This document shows positions 15,491 through 23,498 of a stretch of 64,000 nt of DNA, one piece after another. The stretch lies in IMG/VR virus record IMGVR_UViG_3300049460_000128, positions 232,595 to 296,594 of that record, one strand, 5' to 3'. Within the stretch, counting starts at the first letter, position 1. The number at the start of each line of letters is the position of its first letter. The notes under the pieces are model-generated. The model saw nothing but the letters and a program-made list of their open reading frames with translations. It did no database searches and was not told the DNA's origin. A program made the translations under genes and the position numbers.

Positions 15491-18400
15491 TTAAGCGTAA
15501 ACGCCAGTCATGGTGTACCATTGGCTAGTGGTGGTGGCAACAAACATCAGACGAGCGTTCGGGCCCAGCGAATAGGCGGCATTCAAGCCCAGTGCATCAA
15601 TTGCGACACTCGCCGACGGGAACACACTGATTGTCACCCCGGTAGTATTGATCAAGATACACGTCTGACCTGCGACTGGTACTGGCAATACTACCGCCTG
15701 CGCGGTACCAGCAGTCGCAGTAGAAATTACTGTGATCTGATTGGTGATGCTTGCTCCATTACCCTGTGTACTACCAGCAGCCGCCAAACTTGGTGATACC
15801 GAACTGATAACAAAACGTCCTGTCACATTACCAGTCGCAGTAATGTTTGTGGTGGACGTAATAGCACCGGCAACATTCAATGACGTCAATGTGCCAACCG
15901 AGGTAATTGCTGGTTGAGCTGCATTGGTGACCGTCTGTGCGCTGGTGGCGGTGGCAGCATTGCCAGTTGTGTTACCTGATGCATCTATGTTGAGGGCGAC
16001 GATCTTTGCCAACACACCACTAGCAGTAATACCATTCCATACGTTCACTTGCGTGATAGCACCAGATGCTCCCCGGTAGTTCATATTCAACTGCCCGCCA
16101 GCGAAGCCATTAGCCAGTGTCATCTCATTGGTATTGTCAACGTTCTTATAGCCCGTCAGATTGCCCGTCAGATTGCCCGTAAATGATGGCGCGGTAACAA
16201 TACCAGGGACAGTCAACGCACCAGCATCAGTCACCGTCAAAATAGGGGTCGAGTACGCGTCGTTGAGAACTTGGAAGTTGCCATTTTGTGAGCGGACATA
16301 TTTGATTGGAGTTGTCGCACCATTACCAACCAGTTTGATATTGGCTCCGTTTGCACCGGTGTCAGTGATCAATATTGAGGTTGATGAACCTGATGTAGTT
16401 ACATTCAAATTGCCCGTCAATGTGCCACCAGTAAGCGGCAGTTTTGTGGCATCAGCAACAGTTATATTCGCGGTACCGTCAAATGCGACACCATTTATAG
16501 TACGAGCAGTTTGAAGCTTGGTTGCAGTTGCCGCATTGCCCGATGTGTTACCTTGGGATATCGCATTAGTTACAAATGCCGTAGTTGCAATTAGCTGTGA
16601 GTTATCAGATGGTGGCTGAGTTCCGGCTGTCCACAAACCACTCAAATTCATTGTCGTGTCTGAAATTTGCTGGATCGATGCCATTGCAACACCAGCCCCG
16701 TAGGTGCTAGTGCTAGTCAGGAACGAAATTGGTTGAGTAACCGCCGTATTACTGGCTGGTTTCAAGGCAATACCATACTGAGTTCCATTCCCCGTGTAAT
16801 TGATAGTCACACCCGAGCTGACACCCGTATATGCGCCAGTTGCACCATTGAGGTAAGCAAGACCAGTACTCTGAAGGTTGGTTGCACTAAGGGTACCGCT
16901 TACGGTAGCACCTAAGGTGGTAGTTTGGAATCGTTGACTACCTGCAACGAATGATGTGAATGTACCATCAGGAGCAACCGTAACTCTTGAGGTATTGCCA
17001 ACCATATCAAAAAGAATCAAGTTAGTTCCACCTGCGGAGCCATCAACACCTACAGCCCAACCCAGAACACCAGTATCACGGTAGAATTTAATTTGACCAT
17101 TGCCGCCAACACTAGCAGTTGGATTACCAGCAAACACATGACCAGTTGCATTGACTGAGGTCGCTGACGTAATGGCTCCAGATACAGTCAATGGGCCAGT
17201 CATAGCATCGCCTGCCTTATTGACTGGTGTAAAACCCAACGCACTAGTGATATCACTCGGAATCACGGAAGTCGTCCCCGTCACACGGCCGTAACCGTCA
17301 GTATTCAATTTACGGAACAAGCCAGTACCTGAGTCAGTAACCAGAGCTAAATCCAGTCCGCCAACACTTGATACAATACGGGTTGCAGAAGCCGACAGTG
17401 CCGAAATAGTAGATCCGGTTTTAGTCAAACCATTGCCAGCAATGACTTGGCCCAAGCCCGTAAATTGAGCAAAGGTGAGTGAGGTTGTACCAAGAACAAT
17501 CGCACCATCAGTAGTCAAAACCCAACCTGTGTCGCCATTCGTTGTACCTTGTTCAATGAAGCAATACAATCCAGCAGACACTTCTTGACCAGGTGTATTA
17601 TCTGCGTCCAATGAACGAGCCCACGCACCAGCAGCGACCACGTAGATACCGTTTTGGGTAGCCGTAGTTTGATCTTTAACCAGCACACGATCGCCGGCCA
17701 CAACCGCAACACCGTCAATAGTTTGAGTTCCGGTCAATGCGATATTCGTTGTAGTTGCAACCTTAACCGATGCTTTGAAATCAAGTCCGGTCGTAATGTT
17801 ATCAACATATTGTTTGGTGGCATAATGCGTAGCATTCGTTGGATCAATACCAGTCACAGCATTATTGAAAGTCCAAGTTCCGGCAATAGTTTCGTTGTCT
17901 GCTACGCGAGCCAGCAAACCACCATTCGTAATCTGAGTTTCAACAATAGTCAGAGCAGCTTGATGCTGTGTGACATTCGATGCGGCGATACGAGCATCAG
18001 CAAAGGTACCAGAGGTCACTTGTGACGTAGCAATATCAATTGGAGTCGCACTTACTGCGGTGATCAAACCTTTAGCATTCGCGGTCAAAATTACCGTGTT
18101 GGCTGCCGCACCAAATGAGCCCACATTAGAATTGACGGTTGCCAATGTCAGCGCACTGGATACATCAGCGGAACCATCAACAGCAGCGAGTGTGGCAGTT
18201 GCATCACCAGTGATCGACAAGGAACGGGCATTGGTCCACTTCAATGCAGACGCCACTGATCCACCCGTAGCAGTTGATACGGCATTTGATACGAATGCCG
18301 TAGTAGCCAACTGAGTAGTATTGGTACCAGAAGCGGCGGTTGGTGCAATAGGGATACCAGTCAATGCCGGCGAGGCCAATGGCGCAGCACCTGATACATC

Positions 18401-19381
18401 AGCAACCGCCAAGACTACATTGCCATTACGTCCAGCAACCGTTTGCACAGGAGCAGCAGCCGAAGCACGGGCATTCGTGTAATAGAGGTTAGTGCCTTCG
18501 GCCAAATTGGTGGTCGACTTGGCAGCAAATGCGGCATCAAAACGGGCCTGAGTGTAGTACAAGTTAGACGTACCTTCAGCAGTCACATCAGTCGTGAAGC
18601 TGATGTCGTGGGTGCCATCAAACGGTGTGCTATTGATGTTACGGGCAGTGGTCAATTTGTTAGCTGAACTTGCAGTACCACCAGAAATCTGAGTGTCAAC
18701 ATAGTTCTTGGTAGCAGCACCCAGTGGTAGTACAGGGTCAGCATTCAGAATTAATGCACCTGTCATCGTGTCGCCAGTCTTATTCATGGCATTTACGACA
18801 TCGGACAAATTGATAACCACATTGCCGGTACGGCCAGCAACAGTTTGCACAGGAGCAGCCGCAGATGCGCGTGCATTCGTGTAATACAGATTCGTACCTT
18901 CAGTCAAATTAGTGGTCGACTTAGCAGCAAATGCGGTATTGAAACGCGCTTGAGTATAGTAGAGGTTTGAACCTTCCGTAAGATCATTGGTGGTCTTCGC
19001 ACCCAATGCAGCATCGAAACGTGCTTGAGTATAATAGAGGTTCGTACCTTCAAACAAGTTGGTGGTAGTCTTATTACCGAACGCAGAGTCAAAGCGTCCT
19101 TGGGTGTAATACAGATTACTTTCTTCCAAGACACTGTTGGTCCCAAATGAAATATCCTGAGTGCCATCGAAGACCACACCATTGATTTTACGCCCAGTCA
19201 TCAACTTTACTGCTGTGGCGGCATCTTTACCAATTTCCAAAATGCTTTCAACAGTAAGGACACTACGTTTCATGAACATCTTACCATCGGTAGTGTTCAA
19301 TTGCAGTTCACCGATGGACAGGTCGGTGGTAGCTGGTACGAAACCAGCAACATCAGAGCGTTTAATTAGAATTTTTGCCAT
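15491..19381 (-). CDS. Long tail/whisker fibre with Mtd_N-like head (1296 aa)
   Basis: MAKILIKRS...GELQLNTTDGKMFMK; three KLxTARxINGxxFDGT motifs; six NLYYT repeats; late promoter ATAAATA at 19429-19435. Confidence 0.92.
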   Translation of the reverse strand: MAKILIKRSDVAGFVPATTDLSIGELQLNTTDGKMFMKRSVLTVESILEIGKDAATAVKLMTGRKINGVVFDGTQDISFGTNSVLEESNLYYTQGRFDSAFGNKTTTNLFEGTNLYYTQARFDAALGAKTTNDLTEGSNLYYTQARFNTAFAAKSTTNLTEGTNLYYTNARASAAAPVQTVAGRTGNVVINLSDVVNAMNKTGDTMTGALILNADPVLPLGAATKNYVDTQISGGTASSANKLTTARNINSTPFDGTHDISFTTDVTAEGTSNLYYTQARFDAAFAAKSTTNLAEGTNLYYTNARASAAAPVQTVAGRNGNVVLAVADVSGAAPLASPALTGIPIAPTAASGTNTTQLATTAFVSNAVSTATGGSVASALKWTNARSLSITGDATATLAAVDGSADVSSALTLATVNSNVGSFGAAANTVILTANAKGLITAVSATPIDIATSQVTSGTFADARIAASNVTQHQAALTIVETQITNGGLLARVADNETIAGTWTFNNAVTGIDPTNATHYATKQYVDNITTGLDFKASVKVATTTNIALTGTQTIDGVAVVAGDRVLVKDQTTATQNGIYVVAAGAWARSLDADNTPGQEVSAGLYCFIEQGTTNGDTGWVLTTDGAIVLGTTSLTFAQFTGLGQVIAGNGLTKTGSTISALSASATRIVSSVGGLDLALVTDSGTGLFRKLNTDGYGRVTGTTSVIPSDITSALGFTPVNKAGDAMTGPLTVSGAITSATSVNATGHVFAGNPTASVGGNGQIKFYRDTGVLGWAVGVDGSAGGTNLILFDMVGNTSRVTVAPDGTFTSFVAGSQRFQTTTLGATVSGTLSATNLQSTGLAYLNGATGAYTGVSSGVTINYTGNGTQYGIALKPASNTAVTQPISFLTSTSTYGAGVAMASIQQISDTTMNLSGLWTAGTQPPSDNSQLIATTAFVTNAISQGNTSGNAATATKLQTARTINGVAFDGTANITVADATKLPLTGGTLTGNLNVTTSGSSTSILITDTGANGANIKLVGNGATTPIKYVRSQNGNFQVLNDAYSTPILTVTDAGALTVPGIVTAPSFTGNLTGNLTGYKNVDNTNEMTLANGFAGGQLNMNYRGASGAITQVNVWNGITASGVLAKIVALNIDASGNTTGNAATATSAQTVTNAAQPAITSVGTLTSLNVAGAITSTTNITATGNVTGRFVISSVSPSLAAAGSTQGNGASITNQITVISTATAGTAQAVVLPVPVAGQTCILINTTGVTISVFPSASVAIDALGLNAAYSLGPNARLMFVATTTSQWYTMTGVYA
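18430..19140 (-). repeat. About 75-bp (25-aa) NLYYTQARF repeats and duplicated AAAPVQTVAGR block
   Basis: Four tandem plus two further copies in the translation; DNA near 18430-18570 resembles 18830-18970. Boundaries approximate. Confidence 0.85.
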
Positions 19382-19562
19382 ATCGATCCTTAAGACAAGT
19401 GGCGAGCTGAAGCCCACCGTGTACACGTTATTTATGTCACGTATACGGCCATCAACTAAAAGTGAATTTATTGTATGAAAAACACTTGTAAGTGAAATCT
19501 AATGGCTATACCATTTGTTCGCTGTCAACACTGAATTTTCATTTTATTCATTTGGAGAAGAT

Positions 19563-20642
19563 ATGACCGAAGCCACTACCTCGGAATTGATCGAGCTGGT
19601 AATCAGTTTCGACACCACGGGTTCCATGTATCCATGTCTGGCCGAAGTGCGCCGTCGTGTTGACGAGACCGTCAAACGCCTGTTCGCCGAAATCCCTAAC
19701 CTGCGCATCGGCATCGTTGCCCATGGCGACTATTGCGACGCCGACATCTACGTCACCAAACACCTGCAACTGACCAACGATCCGAACGCTGTTTCCTACT
19801 TCGTGAAGAACGTCGAACGCACCGGCGGCGGCGACTTCCCAGAGTGCTACGAGCTGGTACTCCACGAAGTTGCCAACAAAATGGCATGGACTCCTGGTTC
19901 CAAGCGCGTCCTGGCAATGATCGGTGACGCAACGCCGCACCCGAAAGCCCACAACCCAGGCAAGCTGGACTGGAAAGAAGAACTGAATCGTGTGATCGAC
20001 CAGGGTGTCGTGGTTCACGGCGTTCAAGCAATGAACGTCCACAGCTCCTCGTCCTTCTACCGCGAACTGGCCGACCGCAGCGGCGGCGCCCACCTGAACC
20101 TGAATCAGTTCAACGAAGCCACTGAAATGCTGCTGGCCATGGCCTACCACCAACAAGGTCCTGAAGCGTTCCAGAAATACGAAGAAGAAATCGTGACCAA
20201 GAAGAAAATGACCCGCAGTCTGTCGGGCATCTTCGACAAACTCTCGCGTCGCGATACCACCAGTGGCCGTTACCGCACCATCGATGCCCGTGCCGTTGAC
20301 GCCGGCCGCTTCCAACAGATCGAAGTCGATGCCGACCAACCGATCAAGGACGTGGTTGCAAGCAATGGCCTGGTGTTCAAGACCGGCCGTGGCTTCTACG
20401 AATTCACCAAGCGTGAAACCATCCAGGCCAAGAAAGAAGTCGTTATCCTGGACAAGGAAACCGGCGACATGTACCAGGGCGCCGCGGCGCGCGAAGTGCT
20501 GGGTCTGCCAATCGGCGAAAGCACCGACATTTCGCCGACCTTCGACAAGGCCAAGTACACGGTGTTCGTTCAGTCCACGTCGAACAACCGCAAACTGATC
20601 GGCGGTACGACGTTCCTGTACGAAGTCGACTCGGCCGTGTAA
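19563..20642 (+). CDS. von Willebrand factor A domain protein with an extra C-terminal domain
   Basis: MIDAS DTTGSM, GGGDFPECYE, MIGDATPH; strongly C-ending codons; RBS GGAG. Confidence 0.88.
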   Translation: MTEATTSELIELVISFDTTGSMYPCLAEVRRRVDETVKRLFAEIPNLRIGIVAHGDYCDADIYVTKHLQLTNDPNAVSYFVKNVERTGGGDFPECYELVLHEVANKMAWTPGSKRVLAMIGDATPHPKAHNPGKLDWKEELNRVIDQGVVVHGVQAMNVHSSSSFYRELADRSGGAHLNLNQFNEATEMLLAMAYHQQGPEAFQKYEEEIVTKKKMTRSLSGIFDKLSRRDTTSGRYRTIDARAVDAGRFQQIEVDADQPIKDVVASNGLVFKTGRGFYEFTKRETIQAKKEVVILDKETGDMYQGAAAREVLGLPIGESTDISPTFDKAKYTVFVQSTSNNRKLIGGTTFLYEVDSAV

Positions 20643-20730: not shown

Positions 20731-20991
20731 ATGATTACATTTGAACTACTTAATTGGCCTGAAACATCAGAACTGGATGAAGCTTTGGACTATCTCAATA
20801 TCACGGCATATTGGGTTTCAGGTTTTGAAGATTTTGGTGGTTATCAAATGAGTACTCGATATGTCTGGATCGAATATATTCGTTTCGCAAATGACAGTGA
20901 TGCGGCCCTGTTTGTTCTAACATATGGTGATAAATACCAGCCACAAAAAACCGATCGTGAGATCAAACATGGAATCACCCCATACTACTAA
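20731..20991 (+). CDS. FxDExDA-family small protein
   Basis: IRFANDSDAALFVLTYG; -10 TATCAT lies 5 nt before ATG. Confidence 0.8.
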   Translation: MITFELLNWPETSELDEALDYLNITAYWVSGFEDFGGYQMSTRYVWIEYIRFANDSDAALFVLTYGDKYQPQKTDREIKHGITPYY

Positions 20992-21263
20992 TGACAACAT
21001 TCAAAGTTTATCACGAACTAGACGTGCGCCGCTGGCGAAAAGACGAAGTAGAACAACAAGTCGGTAATGCACTGGAATTCAATTCATATAAGGTCTATAT
21101 CGATGAATTGGCTGGCTGCTATATGGCTATCACTATGATTCAATTTAGTGATGAAGATGATGCCGTAATGTTCCGCTTAAAGTATGGCGATACCTGGAAT
21201 GCATCAGCCATGTTGGCCTCAGAGTTCCGTGAAGGTCACAAAAGGTCATACGTGGGAGGCTAA
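20991..21263 (+). CDS. FxDExDA-family small protein
   Basis: IQFSDEDDAVMFRLKYG. Confidence 0.8.
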   Translation: MTTFKVYHELDVRRWRKDEVEQQVGNALEFNSYKVYIDELAGCYMAITMIQFSDEDDAVMFRLKYGDTWNASAMLASEFREGHKRSYVGG

Positions 21264-21285
21264 TGTTCATTTGTCCAAAAAGTTG

Positions 21286-21292
21286 ATAAATA
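21286..21292 (+). promoter_or_regulatory. Late promoter ATAAATA inside a hairpin
   Basis: GTTGATA 21282-88 / TATCAAC 21296-302; outer TGTCC 21272-76 / GGACA 21308-12 overlaps the RBS. Confidence 0.6.
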
Positions 21293-21317
21293 CAATATCA
21301 ACCTCGAGGACACTTCC

Positions 21318-21527
21318 ATGAAGCTTTTCGCTATATCGGCCCTGTGTGCTTTGATTCTCATAAGTATCATCGTACTGTCTGGCTGCGCTCAATCAATCAT
21401 CCCAACCCCAACTCCATTCACCACCGGCGAAGAAGTCCAACCAGTTAAGGGTTGCTTGATGCTGCGTGAAGAAGTTGAAAAGTACAATGCCAAGCATCCT
21501 CAATCACCCAAGAAGGCGGATTGCTAA
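21318..21527 (+). CDS. Small lipoprotein
   Basis: Lipobox LSGC; two further Cys (PVKGC ... KADC). Confidence 0.8.
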   Translation: MKLFAISALCALILISIIVLSGCAQSIIPTPTPFTTGEEVQPVKGCLMLREEVEKYNAKHPQSPKKADC

Positions 21528-21913
21528 TGGACATTATTCACGACACCTTGGCTGAGATTCATAAACGAGTCTACGGCCATTTCACTTACCAGACAGATCT
21601 GGAACAATACGGCGTGCTGGAAAAGTGGGTTATGCCCACTGATACATTCCAGGATTTCAAGGGCGACTGTGAAGATTTTGCCCTTGCTTGCCGTAAACTC
21701 TGCACCGCATCCACCAACCCATTGCTGCCAACCCGTTTGGTGGTTTGTACTATTGATGGCGAAGGGCATTGCGTTCTGGAATGCCAGGGCTGGATCATGT
21801 GCTGCAATCAGAAGACTCTCATGAGCCGCGATCAGTTGGCAAAAGAAGGTTACGAATGGCTGTATATCAGTGGCTTCCATCCCAACGATGCTTGGCACAA
21901 AATTACAGGTTGA
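21527..21913 (+). CDS. Transglutaminase-like cysteine protease (BTLCP/LapG family) catalytic domain
   Basis: YQTDLEQYG..EKW, GDCEDFAL and GHCVL motifs; TAATG coupling to the lipoprotein. Confidence 0.82.
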   Translation: MDIIHDTLAEIHKRVYGHFTYQTDLEQYGVLEKWVMPTDTFQDFKGDCEDFALACRKLCTASTNPLLPTRLVVCTIDGEGHCVLECQGWIMCCNQKTLMSRDQLAKEGYEWLYISGFHPNDAWHKITG

Positions 21914-21965
21914 TTTTTGTTCATTTGTCAACTATAATTCACATATTAGGTCAACAGGAGTGCAT

Positions 21966-22088
21966 ATGAACAACGAACAAATTGTTTATCCGAAATACGG
22001 TAATGCCATTGACAACATGCTGTGCGTCTATGGTGGTGCAACCCTGGTGGCCATCTGCATGACGATCTATACGTTAATTCATGTATAA
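21966..22088 (+). CDS. Small membrane protein (40 aa)
   Basis: RBS AGGAG; promoter TTGATT-17-TATAAT at 21910-21938. Confidence 0.6.
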   Translation: MNNEQIVYPKYGNAIDNMLCVYGGATLVAICMTIYTLIHV

Positions 22089-22302
22089 CATTTGGCAACG
22101 CGAATACGAGTTTGCCATTCAGGTAAAACTCCCAACTGAATCACGCACAACAAGTCATACGGATTGGTTGCGTGAAAATGTTGGTCATGAAAATCTTGAT
22201 TGGGCCTATGGCTTCGTCACAGCCACACTGGATGTTATCGTCTATCAATTCTACTTCCGCGACGAAGGCGACTTAGCTCGTTTCAAGCTGGCAATGTTGT
22301 AA
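22081..22302 (+). CDS. FxDExDA-family small protein
   Basis: FYFRDEGDLARFKLAML. Confidence 0.8.
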   Translation: MYNIWQREYEFAIQVKLPTESRTTSHTDWLRENVGHENLDWAYGFVTATLDVIVYQFYFRDEGDLARFKLAML

Positions 22303-22394: not shown

Positions 22395-22589
22395 ATGACT
22401 AAAAATATCAAACTCGTTGTGATAGCTGTTCTGGCTATCCTCTTTATCTGGGCAGGCTTCTCAATCAAGGAAGCTTGGACTCATGTATCCACACAAGCGG
22501 AACAAAGCACCATGCTGATGTGGACTGTGGGTTGGCTGTTGTCGCCAGCTGCCACCGCTGCCTTGTTGAAAATCCTTACAGACGAATAA
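22395..22589 (+). CDS. Small two-TM membrane protein
   Basis: RBS GAGG; MTKNIKLVVIAVLAILFIW. Confidence 0.7.
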   Translation: MTKNIKLVVIAVLAILFIWAGFSIKEAWTHVSTQAEQSTMLMWTVGWLLSPAATAALLKILTDE

Positions 22590-22631: not shown

Positions 22632-23009
22632 ATGACCTGGAATGCAGAGCAATACCTGAAAGGTCAGCACATACGGCAATTGCTTCAACTCCGCAATGCT
22701 TGCCATAAGTTCAATGGCTACTACGATATCTGCGACCATAGCGGTTGTGTGGTGACTATCGATCAAGTATTGGCGGAACTCAACACGCGGCCACACTTGG
22801 CACGTGGTAAAGAAGCTAAACTGTTGCGGCGGCTCATGGCAGAAAATCGCATGACTGACGAGCAAGTGCGGGCAATTCCAAAATTCGCGACCATGTTGGC
22901 ACAAGCGCAACCACGTCGTGTTGTATCGGCCGAAACATACAATCAGTACAAAATGGCTGCTCCTGAATGCTGGGTGACCAAAAAGATGATTGTATTGCCT
23001 AAGCCATGA
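22632..23009 (+). CDS. Hypothetical protein
   Basis: RBS AAGGA; ATGA-coupled to the next gene. Confidence 0.7.
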   Translation: MTWNAEQYLKGQHIRQLLQLRNACHKFNGYYDICDHSGCVVTIDQVLAELNTRPHLARGKEAKLLRRLMAENRMTDEQVRAIPKFATMLAQAQPRRVVSAETYNQYKMAAPECWVTKKMIVLPKP

Positions 23010-23293
23010 GCCGCATGGTTTATTTCGCAGATGGTGCCCCGATGGAACCAGCCTGGCGTCATTTACCGTTCTTTGACATAGCCGTTCATTCGATCAATGA
23101 TAAGTTGAATATTGATGAATACAAGGAAATGATCGACTTCCTTGGCACCACGTCTAGTAGGACGTTGAGATTCCAGATACCTGGTGATATTTGGAATATT
23201 GATGTGATTCGTTATTTCTTTGATGATGACGAAAGCAAGGCTGTATTCCGGTTAAAGTATTACCAGCTTGAATACGTGACTCTTCCACCATAA
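23006..23293 (+). CDS. FxDExDA-family small protein
   Basis: YFFDDDESKAVFRLKYY. Confidence 0.78.
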   Translation: MSRMVYFADGAPMEPAWRHLPFFDIAVHSINDKLNIDEYKEMIDFLGTTSSRTLRFQIPGDIWNIDVIRYFFDDDESKAVFRLKYYQLEYVTLPP

Positions 23294-23341: not shown

Positions 23342-23420
<79 letters not shown>

Positions 23421-23423
23421 TTT

Positions 23424-23498
23424 GGACCGTTAGCTCAGGGGCAGAGCGCAGAACTCATAATTCTAGGGTCACTGGTTCGAAACCAGTACGGTTCACCA
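23424..23498 (+). tRNA. tRNA with CAT anticodon, probably elongator Met (Ile2 not excluded)
   Basis: Acceptor GGACCGT/ACGGTTC, A73, CCA; loop CTCATAA; paired 1:72 so not an initiator. Confidence 0.88.

Follow-up and report, generated by a model that had tools for sequence, protein, structure and literature searches.

We analysed a 64,000-nucleotide stretch of viral DNA (the window; positions 232,595 to 296,594 of IMG/VR record IMGVR_UViG_3300049460_000128) and, within it, two overlapping genes that we call ORF1 and ORF2 (open reading frames; the positions of all features are collected in Table 1). ORF1 encodes a small lipoprotein of 69 residues, referred to here as the anchor, and ORF2 encodes a leaderless catalytic chain of 128 residues that belongs, by Pfam match, homologues and structural model, to the BTLCP (Peptidase_C93) proteases. 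An earlier note, made from the sequence alone, had read the locus as one such protease split into a lipoprotein anchor and a signal-less chain. That reading was borne out: the pairing recurs at other loci, and fused forms of the two chains exist.

The window forms the terminal 64 kb of a virus record of 296.6 kb, whose completeness is estimated at 70%. It encodes tail-fibre proteins, rIIA and rIIB, a Lon-like protease and two tRNA-Met genes, a gene content that points to a jumbo tailed phage as the source.

Two overlapping genes encode a lipoprotein and a leaderless protease domain

The product of ORF2 is a cysteine-protease domain of the BTLCP/LapG type. It matched the Pfam family PF06035 (Peptidase_C93) with an E-value of 1.8e-11 and 44.5 bits (cut-off 27) over profile positions 40-157 of 162, and a six-frame search of the genome with the same profile gave 46.3 bits. 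The AlphaFold2 (AF2) model of the chain has a pLDDT of 90.6. In a Foldseek comparison the best PDB match of this model was LapG of P. fluorescens (4u65_E, TMq 0.71), and the L. pneumophila LapG structures 4fgp, 4fgo and 4fgq followed with TMq values of 0.56-0.64. The earlier note had also remarked that this gene lacks an export signal, and we likewise found no hydrophobic segment in its product (the highest 15-residue Kyte-Doolittle mean is 0.97, and the N-terminus scores -0.05). A word search recovered 91 homologues of 94-149 residues, 90 of them between 116 and 149 residues, mostly from metagenomic contigs of which some exceed 200 kb; all 30 homologues that were aligned are leaderless.

The product of ORF1 begins with a short, positively charged stretch (M-K-L-F) without a twin arginine (RR) and continues into a strongly hydrophobic core, behind which stands the lipobox L-S-G-C with Cys23, as had been noted before. 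The mature part comprises 46 residues with a P-T-P-F motif, a G-C pair at C46 (within P-V-K-G-C) and a terminal A-D-C, in which C69 is the final residue; C46 and C69 are the only cysteines of the mature part. ORF1 matched no family in Pfam or PHROGs, and a word search returned a single relative. We searched a profile of mature ORF1 exhaustively against 1.84 billion representative proteins and found 45 matching clusters, every one 44-86 residues long. A strict lipobox is present in 42 of the 45, a C-terminal Cys in 43 and exactly two post-lipobox Cys in 41. The pattern common to the anchors of the split loci described below runs from the lipobox to P-T-P-F, then to G-C-x-x-L-[RK] and to a final Cys. 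Scans of viral contigs with ORF1 and with ORF2 yielded no usable relatives. The idea that ORF1 is an o-spanin (Rz1-like) was considered and rejected, because its conserved partner is a soluble protease domain, no spanin family in PHROGs or Pfam was matched and no lysis genes adjoin it.

Coupling at the junction and the question of recoding

The stop codon of ORF1 and the start codon of ORF2 overlap in the sequence TAATG, the arrangement on which the coupling of the two genes had been proposed, and an SD-like (Shine-Dalgarno) sequence, AAGGCGGA, lies in the last codons of ORF1. The same layout was found in all 11 split loci compared, where ORF2 has its own ATG and an SD inside the terminal ORF1 codons, and likewise in the loci with twin-arginine (Tat-type) anchors that are described below. 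The junction SD reads GGCGGAT where the anchor is of the A-D-C type and GGAGG or GAGGTGG where it is of the G-G-x-C type, and the distance between stop and start ranges from -7 to +2 nt across the split loci.

The earlier note had suggested that the two halves may be joined by recoding. On this reading, ribosomes that slip by -1 or hop close to the stop codon of ORF1 would yield a minor share of full-length, Sec-exported lipoprotein protease. It is true that ORF2 of the window lies in the -1 frame relative to ORF1, that the 16 codons upstream of ORF2 are free of stops in this frame (from 21479, following a TGA at 21476-78) and that natural fused homologues show a single-chain form to be viable. 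However, a scan of ORF1 found no in-frame X_XXY_YYZ heptamer, as had already been observed in spite of the open -1 frame, and no homopolymer of five or more bases. Across loci, ORF2 lies in the -1 frame in eight cases and in the +1 frame in three, and its open upstream stretch varies from 4 to 22 codons and is not conserved. The ATG and SD that ORF2 possesses at every locus, the varying frame and the lack of a slippery site thus argue for termination-reinitiation coupling and make recoding very unlikely; we regard its probability as close to negligible. A sequencing error at 21525-27, which had been raised as a doubt, is excluded, since the junction ...GATTGC TAA TG recurs identically in three independent contigs (L003, L004 and L009).

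The pair recurs across phages and bacteria

Besides the window, we inspected 11 Sec-type split loci: seven metagenomic phage-like contigs (L003-L010), the cultured Xanthomonas jumbo phages LucasX (LUCX_127/126) and PhiXhv-12, a Thermoguttaceae prophage in which a tail-fibre gene flanks the pair on one side and a tail-fibre assembly gene on the other, and a Desulfobacteraceae locus with phage-type neighbours. At all 11 a homologous lipoprotein of 45-69 residues is encoded directly upstream of the catalytic gene, and the catalytic chains of these paired loci range in identity to that of the window down to ~30%. The pairing of ORF1 with ORF2 is far beyond chance.

The two chains also occur as one. 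The earlier note had proposed checking for fused homologues, and a scan of species-representative genomes turned up two, both bacterial. In Pontibacterium sinense (L023), a single ORF in ordinary chromosomal surroundings runs from a lipobox (L-T-G-C) through P-T-P-F and G-C-T-D-L-R-N-R-G-G-H-C straight into the catalytic domain. In a Desulfobacteraceae metagenome-assembled genome (L048), a single ORF joins a lipobox, the anchor segment and the catalytic domain, and a split pair (L097) is also present in this genome; its catalytic chain shares 59% identity with that of the fused gene. When 400 genomes of Pontibacterium's class were searched for further fusions, only canonical BTLCP/LapG-like matches were found.

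The order of ORF1 and ORF2 is also the order of parts in ordinary single-chain BTLCPs. In the 20 full-length canonical bacterial BTLCPs that we compared, a type-I signal peptide leads into a segment in which P40, C47 and C54 are invariant, and the domain comes next; the canonical alphaproteobacterial members, including Caulobacter HvyA (PMC4241560), follow this plan of signal, Cys pair and domain. The ORF2 family aligned with the canonical BTLCPs at an hhalign probability of 99.3%, with the alignment starting at canonical residue ~68. ORF2 thus starts past the canonical signal and Cys pair, and ORF1 occupies the place of the missing segment. The resemblance that had been noted between the P-x-x-G-C...P...C stretch of ORF1 and the Cys-pair N-terminus of full-length BTLCPs therefore holds as an equivalence of position and not as one of sequence: a comparison of the ORF1 profile with the canonical segment gave an hhalign probability of 5% and no detectable similarity. 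ORF1 appears to correspond to the canonical N-terminal segment by position and architecture. The canonical proteins differ further in that they carry a type-I signal rather than a lipobox, consist of one chain and have their Cys pair 6 residues apart, compared to 9-22 in the ORF1 family.

Among the characterised enzymes, the closest likeness is to LapG (P. fluorescens, L. pneumophila; MEROPS C93), with which ORF2 shares PF06035, the fold, the catalytic Cys and His and the G-D-C-E-D motif. LapG, however, is a single chain with a Sec signal that is held by LapD, whereas in the present pair a lipoprotein encoded on its own supplies the export signal and the anchor. ORF2 is moreover leaderless, ~60 residues shorter and only 14-19% identical to LapG, and its third triad residue is Cys. 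A search of the 296.6-kb record for LapD_MoxY_N gave no match, and the control genomes gave none either.

The two genes could instead be independent neighbours, with ORF2 a cytoplasmic protease or transglutaminase, ORF1 a separate envelope lipoprotein that blocks superinfection or a receptor (compare T5 Llp and Cor), and operon history as their only bond. Such independence would fit the absence of an export signal from all 30 aligned members of the ORF2 family and the inability of a Sec-type anchor to carry ORF2. It would also fit one lineage (L115/L116) that retains ORF2 beside a broken ORF1, a distant phage relative (L013) without an anchor gene, and the prophage copy that adjoins tail-fibre genes, a frequent site of exclusion lipoproteins. 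We nevertheless consider it unlikely. The adjacency, with its junction of -7 to +2 nt, holds to ~30% identity and in very different genomes; two fusions have arisen independently (L023 and L048); anchors with Tat signals beside leaderless partners make little sense for a lone 35-residue peptide; and the characterised BTLCPs all act in the periplasm (PMC4241560).

Cysteines of the anchor

In the Desulfobacteraceae lineage, both anchor cysteines are absent together (P-H-G-W-T-D-Y... ending in G-G-E), and the catalytic chain retains the Cys equivalent to C74 of ORF2. The fused L023 protein shows the converse, with the anchor Cys pair present and the C74 equivalent absent. The joint loss of the anchor cysteines while the C74 equivalent stays, together with this converse case, argues for an internal disulfide and against an inter-chain link. 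Consequently, the disulfide between the chains that the earlier note had entertained as a second way of joining them is not supported, and the Cys pair of ORF1 most likely forms a disulfide within ORF1, as judged from this pattern of loss.

The conserved cysteines could be given another role, in which ORF1 is a propeptide-like inhibitor or immunity factor that blocks the protease, for example by placing its C-terminal Cys at the active site, and so protects the infected cell or neutralises a neighbour's enzyme. The last residue is Cys in 43 of the 45 family representatives, the anchor segment of the fused forms is N-terminal to the domain, as propeptides are, and tight coupling would give roughly 1:1 synthesis. 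However, the codons of the terminal G-G-x-C or A-D-C also serve as the SD of ORF2 and may be conserved for that reason alone, and the Desulfobacteraceae lineage lost both cysteines and kept the pair of genes. We give an inhibitory role a small chance.

The predicted catalytic site of ORF2

The predicted catalytic residues of ORF2 are Cys48, within G-D-C-E-D, and His81. Both are invariant in the 30 aligned homologues and align with the columns of C109 and H143 in canonical BTLCPs, and D47, E49 and D50 of the same motif are invariant or nearly so. The acidic residues that flank the catalytic Cys of LapG reportedly bind Ca2+, which would suit a place of action outside the cytoplasm.

The third position of the triad, which is Asp in BTLCPs and Asn in some of them, differs. 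Most relatives read W-I-L-D-N in this region, whereas ORF2 reads W-I-M-C-C-N and has Cys92 in the Asp column, which confirms the earlier observation that the usual region of the third catalytic Asp reads MCCN. The change from Asp to Cys is kept as C-C-N throughout the window's clade (P0001-P0011), down to 57% identity, and it also occurs, with an independent origin, in a bacterial Tat-type copy (L119; W-I-L-C-N-L). Its retention across the clade and its independent appearance in L119 argue against simple decay.

The substitution raises the alternative that the copy in the window is a relic or pseudo-enzyme that has lost its catalytic activity and has a structural or binding role only. In its favour are the Cys at the Asp column itself and the HvyA mutant D241A, which is non-functional (PMC4241560). 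On the other hand, Cys48 and His81 are invariant, C-C-N is kept clade-wide and arose a second time in L119, and HvyA D241N is functional, so that the third position tolerates change (PMC4241560). We assign a dead enzyme a slim chance.

Predicted contact between the chains

We predicted the complex of ORF2 with mature ORF1 and obtained an ipSAE of 0.48, compared to 0.00 for the best of three controls; the prediction runs agreed in at least 96% of contacts, and the pLDDT of the partner was at least 74. In calibration, 58 of 80 solved complexes attained the mark set for this predictor, as did 2 of 110 mismatched pairs; at scores of 0.60 or below it was passed by only 7 of the 80 solved complexes and by both of these mismatches. 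The verdict of the predictor thus lends weak support to physical binding of ORF1 and ORF2.

An analogy for such an arrangement is the vasohibin-SVBP pair, in which a transglutaminase-like (TG-like) Cys protease without a signal peptide needs a partner of ~60 residues, and which appears low in the fold list of ORF2. The likeness is one of analogy only: the Foldseek probability lies at 0.2-0.3, the two partner chains are unrelated and the biological settings differ.

Tat-type anchors in bacteria

Two of the 45 anchor clusters carry a twin-arginine motif, and tracing them into metagenomes led to ~11 distinct bacterial loci. Their anchors have the pattern [ST]-R-R-x-[FL]-L, a mildly hydrophobic core and a lipobox, and the gene of a leaderless catalytic chain follows in overlap. 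The contigs of these loci reach 1.28 Mb, and the neighbouring genes are those of thioesterase, oxidoreductase, regulator, P450 and MscS proteins; such ordinary metabolic neighbours and long contigs indicate that they belong to bacterial chromosomes.

The Tat pathway exports folded proteins and can carry partners that have no signal of their own. A peptide of ~35 residues has little other reason to use Tat, which suggests that the pair assembles in the cytoplasm and crosses the membrane together. On this reasoning, the pair in Tat-type bacteria is probably exported as a folded, pre-formed complex in which the leaderless chain hitch-hikes, and it is a candidate for a minimal Tat hitch-hiker. The same layout, with the signal on one subunit and a leaderless partner, is known from the Tat hitch-hiker pairs HybO/HybC (hydrogenase-2) and DmsA/DmsB. 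The carrier here differs in being a lipopeptide of ~35 residues without a cofactor. The anchor of the window, moreover, has no RR, and this route is closed to the phage copy; all phage and prophage copies, that of the window included, have Sec-type anchors.

A proposed mechanism for the phage pair

We propose that ORF1 and ORF2 together make up a single envelope enzyme of two chains, a lipid-anchored protease (or transglutaminase) of the BTLCP/LapG type. According to this mechanism, the export signal and the short Cys-pair segment of ordinary BTLCPs would have become a separate, lipid-anchored peptide of 46 residues, the two polypeptides would be made separately through tight termination-reinitiation coupling, and the catalytic chain would bind the anchor non-covalently. 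The phage anchor would travel alone to the periplasm through Sec and be lipidated there, and the catalytic chain would accumulate in the cytoplasm and be let out only by the permeabilisation of the inner membrane at lysis. After this breach, late in infection, it would attach to the anchor and cleave or cross-link a protein of the envelope. The identity of the domain, the conservation of the pair, the fused forms, the Tat-type variants and the separate initiation of the two chains are established, whereas we infer the physical binding, the compartment and timing in the phage, the catalytic competence with Cys in place of Asp, and the substrate. Taken with its full mechanism, we hold the proposal to be evenly poised between right and wrong.

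The timing follows from the signal. Because the phage anchor has a Sec-type signal, it would be exported alone and leave the catalytic chain in the cytoplasm. It may thus take the breach of the inner membrane at lysis to bring the phage chains together, a suggestion that we hold to be less likely than not; if so, the protease or transglutaminase activity would be confined to the end of infection. The distant relative in the Thiohalocapsa phage LS06-2018-MD03 (L013) is a leaderless TG-like peptidase directly upstream of genes annotated as hemolysin, Rz-like spanin and peptidoglycan hydrolase, a gene order that appears compatible with a lysis-timed meeting. An enzyme whose halves are kept apart until the holin opens the membrane, and which derives from a bacterial system with a Tat lipopeptide of ~35 residues, would be a new kind of lysis-timed envelope effector; we think it rather doubtful that the phage pair is one.

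Comparison with known lysis proteins shows both kinship and distance. As with signal-less, holin-dependent endolysins, the cytoplasmic enzyme would reach the envelope only once the membrane has been breached, and as with the Rz/Rz1 spanins, the gene of a small outer-membrane lipoprotein tightly overlaps that of its partner. However, ORF2 is a soluble TG-like cysteine protease, neither muralytic nor a type-II membrane i-spanin, and the module lies outside any recognisable lysis cassette. The substrate may be sought in several directions: release of a LapA-type adhesin, as by LapG, interference with the capsule, as by HvyA (PMC4241560), and destruction of a receptor are all possibilities by analogy.

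Several observations weigh against the proposed two-chain enzyme. The Sec-type anchor offers the catalytic chain no known route through an intact membrane. The window's clade, as aligned, carries Cys at the Asp of the triad, where the D241A change leaves HvyA inactive and the D241N change leaves it active (PMC4241560). The anchor profile, as noted, showed no likeness to the canonical segment, and the support for binding is weak; when the fused L023 protein was modelled with AF2, its anchor segment reached a pLDDT of ~50, probably because only two alignment rows cover it, so that the model does not bear on the packing of this segment. Fusions are rare, none having appeared among the 45 profile matches. 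In L115/L116 the anchor gene is broken, with a stop before a P-F-T-P-I-V...A-D-C remnant and no signal peptide, and the catalytic gene (the broken anchor lies upstream of L115 1195) is intact. At the closer phage loci, the module lies among auxiliary genes (AAA_28, YqeY, Cpn10/60, Peptidase_M3) and not in lysis cassettes. Finally, the prophage copy occupies a 'moron' position between tail-fibre genes and, to judge from this placement, could act in intact lysogens.

Upstream elements and neighbouring genes

Just upstream of ORF1 lies a 12-mer, TGTTCATTTGTC, with an exact second copy before the next small gene. The 296.6-kb genome contains three exact copies, of which two flank the module and the third is at G000:C1:33873-33884, and the 12-mer is a possible shared local regulatory element. 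An RNA hairpin ahead of ORF1 has part of the ribosome-binding site of this gene paired in its outer stem and a predicted folding free energy of -13.8 kcal/mol (z = -2.55 compared to shuffled sequences). The earlier note had placed a late promoter within this hairpin; the hairpin and its contact with the ribosome-binding site stand, and the promoter is not confirmed. The T4-type late-promoter motif TATAAATA was found twice across the window against 0.94 expected, which is no enrichment, and a sigma-70 consensus scan found nothing ahead of ORF1, so that the reading of the hairpin loop as a late promoter is unsupported. A sigma-70-like promoter, assigned by consensus match only, precedes the next gene.

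Table 1. Positions of the features discussed (window coordinates unless a locus is named)
Feature	Position	Strand	Description
ORF1	21318-21527	+	69-residue small lipoprotein (anchor chain) with N-terminal signal and lipobox
ORF1 signal and lipobox	21318-21386	+	Encodes the residues up to Cys23
ORF1 C46	21453-21455	+	G-C within P-V-K-G-C
ORF1 C69	21522-21524	+	Final residue
Coupling junction	21513-21529	+	SD-like AAGGCGGA at 21513-21520 in the last ORF1 codons; stop TAA 21525-21527; ORF2 ATG 21527-21529
ORF2	21527-21913	+	128-residue leaderless BTLCP (Peptidase_C93) chain
ORF2 Cys48	21668-21670	+	Predicted catalytic residue
ORF2 His81	21767-21769	+	Predicted catalytic residue
ORF2 Cys92	21800-21802	+	At the Asp position of the triad
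12-mer TGTTCATTTGTC	21264-21275	+	Just upstream of ORF1; exact second copy at 21918-21929
RNA hairpin	21272-21311	+	Inner 7-bp stem and outer stem
ORF1 ribosome-binding site	21306-21310	+	GAGGA; partly paired in the outer stem
Sigma-70-like promoter	21910-21938	+	TTGATT-17-TATAAT; 10 of 12 consensus positions; ahead of the next gene
ORF3	21966-22088	+	40 residues, one hydrophobic (predicted membrane) segment; directly downstream of ORF2
VWA_4 protein	19515-20642		von Willebrand factor A domain, 375 residues; immediately upstream of the small-ORF block
Tail-fibre-like protein	15491-19426		1311 residues; strand opposite to the adjoining VWA_4 gene
tRNA-Met (CAT), two adjoining genes	23342-23420 and 23424-23498		
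Distant TG-like peptidase	L013 1950-2345		Thiohalocapsa phage LS06-2018-MD03; no anchor gene
Tat-type anchors (L112-L131)	L114 1013-1195; L119 1010-1195; L121 980-1195; L126 1014-1193; L127 983-1180; L128 115-306		~60 residues

A gene for a protein of 40-41 residues resembling ORF3 stands at the corresponding site of the two closest contigs (L003 and L004) and is absent from L005, L007 and L008; ORF3 may or may not belong to the module. A second small hydrophobic protein of ~63 residues with two predicted membrane segments is encoded farther downstream (about 22398-22589), and neither of these two small proteins matched a family. Four small ORFs around the module (20731-20991, 20991-21263, 22081-22302 and 23006-23293) look like weak paralogues of one another at 28-31% identity. 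They have the motif F-x-D-x-x-D-A-x-x-F-x-L-K-Y-G in common, and one of them has a faint match to DUF7529. Similarity to catalogued phages (Acinetobacter) at the DNA level is confined to the neighbouring tRNA-Met genes.

Significance of the split architecture

In river-water phages, the 'auxiliary' gene detected most often is reportedly that of a BTLCP, treated there as an ordinary single-chain enzyme (PMC11283719). Phage BTLCP genes are thus already known, and what appears new is the split into two genes with a lipoprotein partner; in our literature search no paper dealt with this lipoprotein, with the division into two chains or with the Tat-type variant. Recognising that the phage form is always a leaderless chain with a lipoprotein gene of its own alongside changes its annotation and makes its function testable, and the carriage of the pair by cultured Xanthomonas jumbo phages makes genetics feasible. 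The module is a natural split-enzyme system in three comparable architectures (fused, Tat-coupled and Sec-anchored) and offers a candidate minimal Tat carrier. It may also represent a new class of phage envelope effector that acts at the release stage. If the lysis-timed mechanism is true, such an effector, acting together with spanins or in their place, might release an adhesin or a receptor or loosen the outer membrane.

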